Below are positions 6,538 to 56,164 of a stretch of DNA of 64,000 nucleotides, piece by piece; position 1 is the first letter of the stretch; each line of letters starts with the position of its first letter. The translations under genes and the position numbers were made by a program. Where the stretch lies: the NCBI RefSeq assembly GCF_031769215.1, contig NW_026782161.1, positions 496,001-560,000 of the forward strand. The letters are read 5' to 3'. This stretch comes from Ylistrum balloti. Taxonomy: Eukaryota. The notes below the pieces were generated by a model. The model searched no databases. It was not told the origin of the DNA and saw nothing but the letters and a program-made list of their open reading frames with translations.

Positions 6538-9311
6538 TTATTTTTTCCCTGTACCGTACAAGGCCATCTCGTCCCATGACTTAAAATTTGGTAATTGTTG
6601 GGCTTTTGATTCTTTAAGTTGCTTTTTCTCTTTTCTACTGAGATATCTTTTGGTAGAACTGTTGTTGGAGTGTGCTGTACTGACTTCCTCATTTCCACTG
6701 TTAAGATTTTCTATGTTGTCAGACCCAATATCTGTAAGTGAAGGGAGACCTGACTCAAAATCAGTATGTGCTGATGGTTGAGAGATTGATGAATTATCAT
6801 ATCCCAATCTTACTGAAGCATTTGCACCAGGTCTTAAATCCAACTGCCTTGATTTTGGCAAATCTTCAATTTGTGACTTTTGTGAAATGCCATGAAATGT
6901 CCTTGATGAATCACCATATTCTCTCCTTGGTAAGTCTCCATATTCAAGCTTTGGACCATCTTCTGATTTTAACCTCTGCGAGTTATCACCATCTGACGGT
7001 ACATTACCAACCACCGATCTTGATGACTCGTCAAACTTTGTCCGCGGCAAGAAATCTGATCTTGACCCTAGTGTAATTCCATTCCCTGATGAACCACATG
7101 ACTTTTTCAAATTTTTAAATTTTGAATATGTATCAAAATCATGTCTCTCTTTTTCTTGATTTCGTAGCTTGGGGGGTTCCAGCATTACTTTGTTTTCCTC
7201 TTCATCCTGCTGTTTCAAAGATTCAGATTCCAGCCGATTATACTTTGCTAGTATGCTAGTGAAAGGATTCACCCTCAACTGTTTTAATTGCTCCTCAAAA
7301 GAAAGCTCTTTGGGGTCATTTAAATAGGATGGTTCACTTGTTGGCATGGGAAAGCCTTTTAATCCCCCAGAGTTACTTAACAAGGACATTTTGTTACTGC
7401 CCATCAAAGATTTAAGAGTATTCTCCAAGCGTTCATTCCCTTCCACATCACCATGTTTTAAAGCTTCCAAGTTCTTCTGTACTCTTAAATCATGTCTATC
7501 TATTGCATCCTGTGACAGTCTAGGTCGTTTTGATCGTAGAATTTTGATAGCTGCAGGTCGACTGACAGGAAAACTTTCTACAATCCTGTCCAGGGTCCAT
7601 TCTTCAGGGAATTCTTTGTTTAGAAATCTCATCTGCTCCATTGCCTCCCATGTTAACATTGCTGCTTCTCTTACAGCTGGAAAACTCTTTTTCTGTATTA
7701 TTTTCTGCTTCAAAAATGCTCTTTCTTTTTTCGTCATACTGTAACATACCAAATAAAATCAAGATACTTTCAACAAATAAGCCTGAAATACCTACATACA
7801 TATACATCAAATGTTGACAGAAATTATAAGCCATGTACACTGTGTATGCCCTTTATGATCAATACAAAGAAAATCTACTTCATGATATTACATTGAGACT
7901 CAGGTGATTGAGATTTGAAAGTAGCAGCTGGCTGGCACTTTGATATTTTATAACAAACCATGTAGGCTGCGTATACTCTTCCTGATCGTTGTGAAGAAAA
8001 ATCTACTTGATGATATCACATTGAGACTCAGGTGATTGAGATTTGAATTGTAATACAAGAAGCCTAGCAGCATTGAAGGTCACCTGAGATAAGCAATATT
8101 AATTACAAAGGTTAGGGGGTAAGCAGCTTTCAATTGTCATGAAAAAGAAATTGTGGCATTGATGATAGTAAGCCAAGGTTAATACAAAGTTATTTCCAGT
8201 GGGAAATAAACAACAATATGCTCAAAAGTGTATTTTTTTTCTATAAAAATTATAACTAAAAACAAGAACCAACATGAATTAAGTGTAGAAAAGATCATCT
8301 GCTAGGTTCCAGAAGGATACCAAAGAGTATGTAGGACGCTCTTAAAAAGTGGATTAGAATCAAGGCCAGAAAAAGAGCAACAACTCCTGAGACCAGGTTT
8401 GAAAAATATGTGACTTTTATAGTAACGTTAAACTCCTCCCCAGGAAGAAATGTGAGACACATTTTGGTAATTAAAGCACCTTTTAGATGCTTTCATCCAA
8501 GAAAAGCATTTGATTCTACCATACAAGAGTGTTGAGATGATTTTTTTTCAAATTTAAGTCAATCTGATCGAAATTAAACAAATTATGTTCGAAAACCTGC
8601 TTTTCCTATATAAAATATTGTAGTTTTCATCCCACCTAACAGGGAAATTTGTGACCCTGAACCGATGAAATTCGTGATTTTGGTAAAACACCTTAAGACA
8701 CTTCCATAGATCTATGAAGAGCATTTGATACTACCATTTCTGGGTGTCTAGAAGATTTTTGAAATTCAACTCAGTTTGACCACTTTTTGGCCCCATCCAT
8801 CAACCCCTGGGTGTCAGCCAGGATCAATATGGGCATACCATCAAGCCCTCATCCTTTGCTCATAATTTTAACCAAGTCTGAAATATTTCCAATGGTAATT
8901 AAAACAAATTATGCTCAAAAATATTTTTCCTATGAAATAAAGTAAACATTACACCTTCAGAGCGGGGAAATGTTGAGACCCTGGGGCCATGAAATTCATA
9001 ATTTTGGTATAACACCTTAAAATGCTTCCATCCATGAAGGGCATTTGATCCTATCCCTTCTGGGTGTTAAGAAGATTAGGCACAATTTAAATCTGAGTCA
9101 ATTTGACGAGTATAAGAGTTACATCCCTTGAAAATGAATTTTAACATTATTATGTTTACCTGGCTATGTCAGCGCGACTTGGCAATACCGGTTCCTCGTC
9201 AAGAAATATGTCTTCGTCGTCAAACCATTCCTTTCTACGTCTGGTGGAAAAGTTTACAACGAAACGAGAAATTCGGCTACAGGACGTGAACAGATTCGGT
9301 CTCAACATCAT
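6538..9311 (-). CDS. NGRN: Neugrin (mitochondrial ribosome assembly factor), 2 coding exons, ~450 aa
   Basis: Exon 1 9311-9160 (MMLRPNLFTSCSRISRF..., an Arg/Ser-rich N-terminus resembling a mitochondrial targeting peptide; donor AG|GTAAAC). Exon 2 7738-6538 (acceptor tgttacag). Contains LTWEAMEQMRFLNKEFPEEWTLDRIVESFPVS, matching the neugrin core (human LTWEAMEQIRYLHEEFPESWSVPRLAEGFDVS). Confidence 0.88.
8054..9110 (+). mobile_element. Degenerate non-autonomous Helitron/Helentron-like element with internal subrepeats (NGRN intron)
   Basis: Starts acaagaagcctagcagcattgaaggtcacctgag, homologous to the start of the copies at 28911 and 30004. Three diverged internal blocks (~8440, ~8640, ~8965) share gaccctg...gaaattc...caccttaa...gcatttgat.ctacc. 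Confidence 0.55.
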
Positions 9312-9545: not shown

Positions 9546-12500
9546 ATGGATGCAGCGAAGTCGACAACAACAACATCGGGATTTCAAATTCCTCTTTACG
9601 TTCTAGATGATTTATGCAGGTTTGTACAAAACGACGTTCTGAGCAGTTTTGCATTGAAATAACAGTATGAAATTCACGAACCTCAAAATAAAAGTAATCA
9701 GACTGCGAGTTTCAGAGCTTATAGTCATACCACGGACATGTATATCTATATTTAAGTCCGTGGTCATACTTAAGGGAATCAGGCGTTCTATAATCCGTGT
9801 TATTGTAGGATTTTTTTGCCAGTGAGTATCATTTCCGAAGTTTCAGTGAGTCCCGTTTCAACGAACGAGCTTCTTTTTCACACGAGTATATATTTTATTT
9901 AGAGATGCCTCATGATGATGCTTCTGACTGATTTATTTAATGATTGAATGACGTTAAGTTCTGGTTTATGAGATGTAAACGCCAAAGAGACTTGAGATCA
10001 GGTTTATGAACTCTTGAAATCATATACTCATTTGATACAAACATTTACTAGAATGAATCAAACTTCAAGAAAACATAACGGGTAGGTTGAATGAAAGGGA
10101 GATAATTTATCATAGGCGTTGGGAATAGCTACATGTACCTACACGAGTACTATCGAACGCTCATATGTCAATGACTGGAATTCGGTTCATTTCTCAAAAT
10201 TCATGCGACACACACAGAAAGGGTACGAGTCCATCACTCAGACATTTGATTCCAAAAGTTACTTATAATTGTAACCCTGGTAAAATACTAGCCGCAATAT
10301 ATCGCTCTGCTAGAGAGAACTTCTCTTTAGCTAGATTCGTTGAACCTCAGACTAGTAAGCCAGGGGCCCAAGGTTTGATTCCAAGCGAAGGCATTGAAAT
10401 TAATAATGACCTCTTCTACACCGGGGCCCATGCAGGGACCCAGGAATAGTACTTAGCCATGACCCACCAGCGTTACTTTCACAAGCACCGCTGTGATCCC
10501 TGGTCACTTGAGGACGAGTTATTTCCTTGAAAGGGAGTATGTAACCCTGGTAAAATACTGGCCACAATAGATCACTTGGCTAGAGAGAATTTCTCTTTAG
10601 CTCGATTTGTTGAGTATCAGACTAGTAAGCCAGGGGTCCCGGGGTCGATTCCTAGCAGAGGCGTTGAAATCAATAATGACCTCTGGTACATAATGTTTGG
10701 TAGCATAAAATACACATGTTTATATATGTCTCTGATTTTATGTATAGAATGTCTGATACCTGTTGTCATTCATTAATAGGCCAAATTAACTGGCCATATT
10801 TTCTAATACATGTAGTTGATTGGATTCTGGACTTATCCACGACCATAGGAATTGGACATTCTATATGTGAAACATTCAGTAGCTATTACAGATTCCTGCT
10901 ATTTTAGGAATATAATAGCTATATTTCATATATGGAATGTCCAATTCCTGTGCCCCAACTTATCCTGATCATCTGTCCAGCCTAGTACACAGCACTGTTC
11001 AGAATACTCTGTTTGTACATTATACTAAAGGGTGTAGAGCAAATGCCGTGCTTCTAGTAAAGTTAGAGTAGGTTCCAAGGTCCCTTGCTTGGATACCTCC
11101 AGGTATGCATGACAATTGAAGAGTAGTAAGGAACTAAGGGGTAAGAGGCAATCACAACAAGCTCAGGATACTAAAATTGTTATTTATTATTCTTCGTCTA
11201 CCGATTTCACTCGTAACATATGGGCTTCTTCAGGTCCTGACCTTGTTGCGATTGCCTCTTACCCCTTAGTTATACTACCATGGATGTGTTGACAGGTGTT
11301 GCAAGTGTATTTGATCAGTGCTGTAAAGTATTTGTTACACACAAACAATGGAAGTATAAACAATATCTTAATGTTCTTATACACAAGTCAGGGTAATAAT
11401 GAAATGTGGTACCACATCCATACAATATGTTCATTATGTACTGAGAACTGTAACCACAGGTTAGTTTTGAACATTTTGATTAAGGATGAAATGTGGTAAC
11501 ATATACTTTTTGAAAATTGTAAGTTGTGTTTGGGAAAAGTGAATAGCTGTTAATTTAATGAAATTGTGACCTTTTTTTTAACAGTCGATTCATTATCAAC
11601 ATCCCTGATGAAGAAAGACAGGACCTCATCAGAATATTTTTCCAGATAGAGCTGGCACATTGGTTTTACCTGGATTTCTATTGTGCTGAGAATCCAGAAC
11701 TCCGATCATGTGGAATAAAAGACTTCTCTGCACAAGATATCTTTTAAATATGAAAAGAAAGTGATTTTGTATAGAATAGCAGTATGCATCACACCAATTT
11801 TAGATATGTGAGACCAGATATTAGTGTTAATCCTATGATATCACACCTGCACATGCAAGTAAGCACTGTCTGTATGTCCTTTCGGATCACGAAATTATCA
11901 TTACTTATTTATTTTTTATTCTCTTAATGAGAAAAGAAGGTAATATAATCCCAGTAATGGATATTATTTAGGAAAACAATTTTTGAAATAAGAATGAAAA
12001 CTGGTAGATATATGTTCATGTATAATAATACTTTATCAAATTTTGAACCATGGCTTACACTGTTGGCAGAACTTATCATATACAGAAATATGCAAACAGA
12101 ACTTTACATACAAACATAAACATATATTTTTTCTGATAACATCATGAAAATTAAAAAAAAAAATCAGATATCTGTACTAAAGCCTCTACTGTGACTTACT
12201 GATGAATCTTTTTGAAAACCATTGAAGATCATCATCACATTCTGTCACAATCCATAAATTGCTCAACACTCGACATTTTTTCCCATTAAACCTAATTATG
12301 CAGGCCATAGTTGAAGAAATCTAATTATTGTTTCCTTAGCCTGTTTACTGTTCAAACATTGCCCATTTTTGAGTGGTCATGCAGGTGAAGTGGACAAGAT
12401 TCTGGAGAATTGGCGTACCTATAAGATGAGTGTTCCAACATATGGTGCCATCATGTTGGACCCTGAATTGAAATATGTGAGTGTTTCATGAACATAGTAC

Positions 12501-39751: not shown

Positions 39752-40364
39752 GTGAGTATTTTATGTCTATTTAATTTGACTTGATACGACACCCTGTAAA
39801 GATAAACTCTACTTTTATGGAAGGGTATATAAATGAAATTAAGACACTAACGATCACAATCTTCATATGTTACCAAATACATTTTTAACACCTTTTCGTT
39901 CTAGTCAACTCATTTTTGGCACATCACCAAGACTAGACTGGACCACATTTTGTATGATTGTCCTGTATTTGGTTCGGCGTGGACATTGGCATCAATTAAC
40001 TCGTTTAGGTGAAAGATTTGTTTGAAATAGCCAAGTTTTATTTTTATCTTGAATGTTCATCAAGTTTTATATTTTTACTATAAGGACAGTTAATTGATGT
40101 AAGTTAGATGTATACAGTTGTAGATAATTTGAAATATACATGTAAACGTATAGACTCTGTATATGTTTATGTATGTAAAATGTAAAATGCCAATGTAATC
40201 AATGTCATTATTTGTTCTAGTCCAAGTGTTCTAACTTATCTATCAACATTTTTAAAATTTTTTCCTTGTAATGAACGATCGTCAGTAGAATTCCCACATA
40301 TATAAAAATGCCAAAATTCTTGTGTCTCCAGCAAGAATCGGCATTTCGGCAAAATTTTAAATAA

Positions 40365-40465
40365 AGATAATTTCTCTTTAGCTCTATTAGTTTGGTGTAA
40401 GACTAGTAAGCCAGAGGTTTCGGGTCCTAACAGAGGCATTGGGAAAATAATGACCCCTGATATAT
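40365..40465 (+). mobile_element. Partial copy of the tRNA-containing LTR (same family as 10270-10690)
   Basis: ttctctttagctc...agactagtaagccagaggtttcgggtcctaacagaggcattgggaaaataatgacccct aligns with the 3' two-thirds of the LTR. Confidence 0.72.
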
Positions 40466-56014: not shown

Positions 56015-56164
56015 TGGAACAGAGGTCAATATCCTATCCTTTGCCTCCAGTAGAATTCGAACCCAGTACCTCTGGTTACCAGTCTGATTCCAAACTGATC
56101 GAGCTAAAGAGAAGTTCTCTCTAATCGAGCAATATATTGTGGTTAGTTTTTTACCATGGTTACT
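56015..56164 (-). mobile_element. Solo LTR of the tRNA-containing TRIM family
   Basis: Reverse complement gtaaccatggtaaaaaactaaccacaatatattgctcgattagagagaacttctctttagctcgatcag...cagactggtaaccagaggtactgggttcgaattc...gaggc...atattgacctctgttcca aligns over the full 150 bp with the 10270 LTR. No TSD recovered. Confidence 0.8.

Follow-up and report, generated by a model that had tools for sequence, protein, structure and literature searches.

The element and its decay

The subject of this study is a short transposable element in a stretch of 64,000 nucleotides from Ylistrum balloti (contig NW_026782161.1, positions 496,001 to 560,000 of the forward strand; C304:496001-560000 in our own contig numbering), a stretch which we refer to as the window. 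Our results indicate that the 421 nt at window positions 10270-10690 are very probably a structurally complete and functionally dead Helenus-type TRIM (a miniature retrotransposon with terminal repeats) that was inserted long ago. Helenus has been defined as a TRIM with tRNA-derived long terminal repeats (LTRs), a primer-binding site (PBS), a polypurine tract (PPT) and a 4-bp target-site duplication (TSD) in animals (Kojima 2024, PMC10886601). We found here the TRIM architecture, tRNA-derived boxes in the LTR at the level of the family, PBS and PPT, a 4-bp TSD and homology to the scallop families. An earlier note on this DNA had proposed a Helenus-group TRIM with tRNA-derived LTRs, a Lys(UUU) PBS and a 4-bp TSD, and the anatomy of the family bears this out. 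The further suggestion of a possibly unrecorded family is weak, because both the LTR and the interior have matches among the Helenus families on record for scallops. Judged by these matches, the element most likely represents, in another scallop, the lineage of Helenus-1_MiYe, -3_MiYe, -2_ArIr and -1_PeMa. Elements of this kind were described in 2024, with scallops among their hosts, and the find, though real, is thus an ordinary one.

The two LTRs (10270-10420 and 10540-10690, plus strand) are direct repeats of 151 nt that align without gaps at 84.1% identity, as established both by reading the sequence and by a repeat search, and they enclose a non-coding interior of 119 nt (10421-10539); only short mechanical open reading frames (ORFs) cross the element. 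Both LTRs begin with TGTAAC and have TG..CA termini, the 5′ LTR ending in ..CTACA and the 3′ LTR in ..GTACA, and the whole is flanked on the same strand by the tetramer TAAT at 10266-10269 and again at 10691-10694. One nucleotide past the 5′ LTR lies a decayed PBS (CGGGGCCCATGCAGGGAC, 10422-10439), and a decayed PPT (GAAAGGGAGTA, also given as GAAAGGGAG(TA), 10529-10539) abuts the 3′ LTR. Each LTR contains a tRNA-like block (10321-10393 and 10591-10663) in which TTAGCT.. is followed by the Thr (AGT) anticodon loop CTAGTAA (at 10352-10358 in the 5′ copy) and by a box resembling GGTT(T/C)GA. The repeats, the flanking TAAT, the interior, the purine tract and the tRNA-like segment with its Thr loop had all been claimed in the earlier note, and each of them was found in place.

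The age of the insertion is apparent from the LTR pair, which differs at 24 of 151 positions (15.9%; 15 transitions; Kimura two-parameter distance 0.181), in agreement with the divergence of about 16% and the old insertion claimed previously. The corresponding identity of 84.1% compares with 91-100% in the 406-nt copies of the same family described below. The box A and box B regions are TAGCTAGATTCG (10328-10339) and GGTTTGATTCC (10372-10382) in the 5′ LTR and TAGCTCGATTTG (10598-10609) and GGGTCGATTCC (10642-10652) in the 3′ LTR, so that both boxes are altered in both LTRs relative to the commonest family form. The core TGG of box A has been replaced by TCG or TTG, and the GGTTC of box B by GGTTT or GGGTC. 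In the promoters of tRNA genes, changes within GGTTCGA weaken the binding of TFIIIC, and for this reason we infer that the promoters of the window copy are impaired. Because boxes A and B, the PBS and the PPT all carry substitutions, the copy is a dead relic. Since its insertion, at a site some 0.9 kb upstream of DCP2's first detectable coding exon, it has decayed and lost the ability to be primed, and transcription from its own boxes has probably been lost as well.

Homology to the published scallop families was assessed only with short motifs and by reading the consensus sequences by eye. A 26-mer from the Helenus-3_MiYe/2_ArIr LTR matches at 25 of 26 positions at 10287-10312, a 21-mer from the Helenus-3_MiYe interior at 19 of 21 at 10510-10530, and a 19-mer from the Helenus-1_MiYe LTR end at 18 of 19 at 10672-10690, with a further match at 17 of 19. 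The number of matches of the first three grades expected by chance is 0-0.01. A 30-mer from the same Helenus-1_MiYe LTR end found no match at three or fewer mismatches, owing to an indel.

The family in the genome

The genome examined was that of the window itself (648.5 Mb in 1372 contigs). A similarity search with the window element gave 47 scored full-length matches among 2007 first-look candidates. Patterns were counted over the whole genome with at most two mismatches, using reversed patterns as controls, and this gave at least 328 junctions of LTR end and PBS and 830 LTR core motifs, with no hits for the controls. Hundreds of relatives are thus present in the genome, and a chance resemblance is excluded.

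The anatomy of the family is clearest in 22 other full copies, all of which have TG..CA ends and a unit of 151 + 104 + 151 = 406 nt. The PBS TTGGCGCCCA(T/C)GTAGGGAC directly follows the 5′ LTR and the PPT GGAGGGGGAGTA directly precedes the 3′ LTR in every one of the 22. The 4-bp TSDs are perfect and mutually unrelated in 19 of these copies and carry one mismatch in the other three; TGTA, AACA, TAAA, CAGG and ATGG are examples. Arrays of the form LTR-interior-LTR-interior-LTR occur on C173, C181 and C653. The earlier note would have been refuted by other copies devoid of TSDs, a PBS and a PPT; the copies found here have independent TSDs, a PBS and a PPT and include tandem arrays, so that this refutation fails.

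Pairwise comparison of the copies indicates two subfamilies. Identity between the 5′ LTR of the window copy and the LTRs of the young 406-bp family averages 87%, and the 119-nt interior of this copy is only 71-77% alike to the 104-nt interiors of the 406-nt copies. The same interior reaches 81-89% with a handful of relatives on C85, C403, C97, C666, C383 and further contigs. In those relatives that have kept the sites, these read TTGGCGCCCATGTAGGGAC and, for the tract, AGAGAGGGAGTA. By these comparisons we place the window copy in an older subfamily with a 119-nt interior. Its sister, the 406-nt subfamily, has been active recently and includes two copies (L012 and L016) with identical LTRs.

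Two further observations concern related copies. One copy of the window subfamily (L035:1348-2271, on C666 at about 191.5-192.5 kb) has swollen to 924 nt through about ten tandem repeats of a piece of the interior of about 50 nt, so that a minisatellite has been born inside a TRIM. The window itself holds two decayed Helenus-like LTR fragments of related families, at 56015-56163 on the minus strand and at 40362-40465 on the plus strand, which are 75-77% identical to the family LTR and have neither an interior nor a clear TSD.

The primer-binding site

To identify the primer, host tRNAs were recovered by a search of the genome with the Rfam tRNA model followed by ARAGORN on the recovered loci. 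When the 3′-terminal 15 nt of tRNA-Lys(UUU), extended by CCA, are reverse-complemented, the result is TGGCGCCCATGTAGGGAC, or TGGCGCCCACGTAGGGAC for a second variant of the gene. Each of the two forms of the family PBS, with T or with C, agrees exactly with one of these host variants, at 18 of 18 positions, and the decayed PBS of the window copy matches the host tRNA-Lys(UUU) complement at 15 of 18. The assignment to tRNA-Lys(UUU) in the earlier note was therefore right, whereas its figure of 13 of 18 had been scored against a different Lys complement.

In Figure S2C of Kojima 2024 (PMC10886601) a gap stands in the alignment of this lineage's PBS to tRNA-Lys-CTT of Aplysia. No gap is needed with the host tRNA-Lys(UUU), to which the match is 18 of 18. 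The exact assignment of the primer to tRNA-Lys(UUU) is possibly a new point.

The tRNA-like block

The commonest forms of the two boxes in the family are TAGCTCGATTGG for the box A region and GGTTCGATTCC for box B, and both fit the conserved motifs TRGCY..YGG and GGTTC of Kojima 2024 (PMC10886601). The Rfam tRNA model aligns in full (positions 1-71) with a young LTR, but the score of 14.4 bits is below the threshold of 29. The T loop and the D arm of this LTR are preserved; of the stem pairs, 5 of 7 can form in the acceptor stem, 4 of 5 in the T stem and only 2 of 5 in the anticodon stem. Among the seven host tRNA types sampled (Ala, Arg, Asp, Cys, Gln, Lys and Thr), the nearest are those for Thr, at 69-72% identity. 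We take the block in the LTR to be a relic derived from a tRNA-Thr gene.

A separate locus, L090 (C250:759173-759244), belongs to a second Helenus lineage which by eye matches the published Helenus-3_ArIr LTR. Its tRNA-like block scores 49.9 bits, above the Rfam tRNA threshold, and ARAGORN calls it as tRNA-Asp(atc). It is an example of a TRIM LTR that is liable to be miscounted as a tRNA gene, and for annotation this means that the LTRs of the family and of this second lineage can inflate tRNA gene counts.

The palindrome and the predicted fold

The earlier note had described a hairpin AGAGAA-C-TTCTCT in front of the tRNA-like block. It is seen in both LTRs, with a C or a T at its centre, but as described it was too short, since the real arms have 11 nt. 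In the 5′ LTR the palindrome GCTAGAGAGAA-C-TTCTCTTTAGC occupies 10309-10331 on the plus strand and has the commonest family form; its counterpart in the 3′ LTR is at 10579-10601, and it occurs also at L012:1844-1866 on the minus strand. Its 3′ arm is identical with positions 1-11 of the tRNA-like block, that is, the 5′ acceptor strand and the start of box A. The predicted fold of a young LTR is far more stable than the folds of shuffled sequences (z = -5.3), is not a cloverleaf and contains the palindrome in every predicted structure.

About 20 published consensus LTRs of bivalve Helenus families were read by eye for this feature. The arms differ widely among them while their complementarity is kept, as in the pairs GAGAA/TTCTC, GGGAA/TTCCC, GGGTT/AACCC, GAAGT/ACTTC, GAATC/GATTC and CGTCC/GGACT, and the outer pair changes from T-A to C-G where box A reads TGGC. 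Mismatches in the palindrome are frequently G/T on the sense strand and none was seen to be A/C, which points to pairing in the sense-strand RNA and not to a site in double-stranded DNA. The two central pairs appear to covary as well, and since a hairpin could make no use of them this suggests an intermolecular duplex.

It is possible, and we put it forward tentatively, that the palindrome, with arms of 11 bp and a centre of zero or one base, is a selected element of the sense-strand RNA in most bivalve Helenus families whose block starts with ..CTTTAGC or ..CTTTGGC. Its role could be that of a duplex for RNA-RNA dimerization or packaging, or of a stem that protects the tRNA-like block from processing. 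The palindrome goes unmentioned in Kojima 2024 (PMC10886601), and its covariation is possibly a new observation. If confirmed, the covarying palindrome would count as a functional element that is new for these parasites.

The predicted fold of the LTR at L012:1757-1906 (minus strand) also contains a long-range pairing in which two segments at the LTR's 5′ end, CCCUGGU and the more internal ACUAG, pair with the anticodon-side region of the tRNA-like block, ..CUAGU..GCCAGGG. This pairing closes the LTR structure (z = -5.3), and the outer CCCUGGU/GCCAGGG is kept in both decayed LTRs of the window.

Proposed life cycle and the search for a helper

The conserved A and B boxes of the family would, on balance, recruit RNA polymerase III (Pol III) to make the family RNA, which would run from the 5′ LTR into the 3′ LTR. 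An autonomous LTR element, quite probably one of the Gypsy group, would supply the proteins that package this RNA. Reverse transcription could then be primed by tRNA-Lys(UUU), plus-strand synthesis would start at the purine tract, and a borrowed integrase would insert the copy and make the 4-bp duplication.

A helper might share the primer of its parasite. The exact 18-nt PBS followed by non-Helenus sequence occurs at 22 further sites, which fall into six or seven other LTR families (L091-L112). The closest of these to a helper is the family of L103 (C569:1140855, minus strand) and L112 (C1371:29436, plus strand), which has an 846-nt LTR (TGTAGCAGG...CTGTTACA), a PPT ending in GGAGTA and an ORF that starts about 1.2 kb downstream. 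It is present in 4-5 copies at 98-100% identity, and it has in common with the window family the one-nucleotide T spacer and the LTR end CTGTTACA. We regard it as the best candidate for the helper. Intact Gypsy-type pol frames are many in this genome (939 candidates).

Three same-strand copies of another family that shares the PBS lie on C854 at 21668, 27213 and 33114 (L108-L110), 5.5-5.9 kb apart, an arrangement that resembles a full-size element in a tandem LTR-interior-LTR array.

Alternative explanations

Several results weigh against the account given above. ARAGORN found no tRNA in the window and none in 26 family loci, and the Rfam tRNA model had no hit at E≤10 in the window copy or at E≤1 in 10 family loci. 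Because neither program makes a call, not even for young copies, the description of the block as tRNA-derived depends on an alignment below threshold, on the box motifs and on the literature, and the assignment to Thr was made among the seven sampled host tRNA types only. As regards transcription, the LTR downstream of the tRNA-like block contains no Pol III terminator (T4) that would define an R region. Runs of T4 on the sense strand are absent from the window copy and from 19 of the 22 other copies, while four A4 runs are tolerated; this is compatible with read-through by Pol III, yet the same absence arises by chance in shuffled sequences with a probability of 0.33 and is not significant. 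As regards the helper, a Pfam search of ten ORF starts in the families with the shared PBS gave nothing significant, none of the best 150 of the 939 Gypsy-type candidates, searched for the Gypsy-type RNase H domain (RT_RNaseH_2), adjoins a site with the shared PBS, and a 4-bp TSD alone is no proof of a Gypsy helper.

One alternative is that the structure is no LTR element at all and arose by tandem duplication of a tRNA-derived short interspersed nuclear element (SINE), or by a local segmental duplication, with the TG..CA ends and the flanking TAAT due to chance. The repeats do hold a tRNA-like block, as SINEs do, and TAAT is a common tetramer in AT-rich DNA. However, the LTR-PBS-interior-PPT-LTR unit stands at hundreds of unrelated sites with differing 4-bp TSDs, an exact 18-nt complement of tRNA-Lys lies one base past the LTR, the purine tract abuts the 3′ LTR, and there is neither a poly(A) nor any tail like that of a long interspersed nuclear element (LINE). 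The anatomy, TSDs and PBS of the other copies led us to reject this explanation, to which we give hardly any credence. We find it equally hard to believe that the LTRs carry working tRNA-Thr(AGT) genes, which the element would then distribute in functional form. In favour, the D arm shows no damage, nor does the anticodon loop (CTAGTAA), and seven bivalve Helenus families pass tRNAscan-SE as tRNA-Thr (Kojima 2024, PMC10886601). The silence of ARAGORN on the 26 loci and of the Rfam model on the window copy stands against this, as does the sub-threshold score of the young LTR, since genuine host tRNA-Thr(AGT) genes score 73.7 bits. The few anticodon-stem and acceptor pairs that can form also speak against a working tRNA gene in the LTR, which we rejected.

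A more serious alternative, although one that we think rather unlikely, is that transcription of the family depends on RNA polymerase II, which would start at a promoter in the LTR or read through from host genes, and that the tRNA-like block is a passenger or serves the structure, dimerization or packaging of the RNA. It would account for the want of a T4 terminator downstream of the block. The very stable, non-cloverleaf predicted fold locks the 5′ part of the block in the palindromic stem, this stem appears to covary among the published families, and among the stems of the tRNA-like block the anticodon stem is disrupted and mismatches occur in both the acceptor stem and the T stem. Kojima 2024 (PMC10886601) also calls the Pol III function unproven for Helenus. 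On the other hand, according to the same study boxes A and B are the best-conserved parts of Helenus across bivalves, insects, fish and fungi, the commonest boxes of the present family fit the published motifs, and for Cassandra, a related group of TRIMs, transcription from the 5S promoter has been reported. Transcription of the family by Pol III, as outlined above, remains the reading that we prefer.

Genomic surroundings and significance

The element lies between DCP2 and a minus-strand ORF. An exon encoding the DCP2 box-A domain (74 bits) is at 11580-11744 on the plus strand, about 0.9 kb downstream of the element, and an uninterrupted ORF of 404 codons is at 6538-7752 on the minus strand, 2.5 kb upstream. 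A look-up of exact protein matches for the neighbouring ORF gave no hit. Two strong inverted repeats just downstream of the element, at 10844-10952 and 11132-11271, have arms of 32 nt (88% complementary) and 37 nt (95% complementary), respectively, and look like hairpin elements or elements of the type of miniature inverted-repeat transposable elements.

Taken alone, the window element matters little, since it adds a further decayed copy to a kind that has already been published. The family to which it belongs is of wider use. The 406-bp family, with its copies that have identical LTRs, provides a recently active Helenus in which the Pol III hypothesis can be checked, and its PBS is now precisely assigned to the host tRNA-Lys(UUU).

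Comparison with known systems

The element invites comparison with the tRNA-derived SINEs (SINE2), which are likewise short, numerous and dependent on a helper element, and whose head is also tRNA-like and contains A and B boxes. In contrast to the element described here, SINE2 elements are without LTRs, PBS or PPT, are mobilized by LINEs, are tailed and have TSDs of variable length.

The likeness to Helenus is closer. Fifty-one Helenus families were described from pteriomorph bivalves, three scallop species included (Kojima 2024, PMC10886601), and Helenus-1_MiYe, with an LTR of 151 nt, an interior of 115 nt, a total of 417 nt and a TSD of 4 bp, is of nearly the same size as the window element. 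Helenus-1_MiYe and -3_MiYe (Mizuhopecten yessoensis), -2_ArIr (Argopecten irradians) and -1_PeMa (Pecten maximus) have the LTR start TGTAACCCTGGTAAA.. in common with it, and Helenus-1_MiYe also the LTR end ..AATAATGACCTCTGTTACA. As in the family described here, the palindrome of the scallop families stands before TTTAGCTCGA, GCCAG follows their loop CTAGTAA, and their box B reads GGTTCGA; their interiors start with TTGGCGCCCA(Y)GTAGGGAC and end in ..GAGGACGAGTT.TTTCCTGGAGGGGGAGTA or ..GGAGGGGGAGTA. Their LTRs measure 151-160 nt, their interiors 105-115 nt and their TSDs 4 bp. The sizes of 406 nt (young subfamily) and 421 nt (the older subfamily of the window) are absent from the published table (PMC10886601).

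Helenus has in turn been placed beside other TRIMs under the concept of TRIMp3, a TRIM with a Pol III promoter (Kojima 2024, PMC10886601). Like the element described here, Cassandra of plants and Ajax of nemerteans are miniature non-coding LTR elements with the internal promoter of a Pol III gene in their LTRs. The LTRs of Cassandra and Ajax carry 5S sequences, whereas those of the present family carry a tRNA-like block. In Cassandra, furthermore, a short R region is delimited by a conserved Pol III terminator and the TSD is 5 bp, in contrast to the scallop element, which has no T4 run on its sense strand and makes a TSD of 4 bp.

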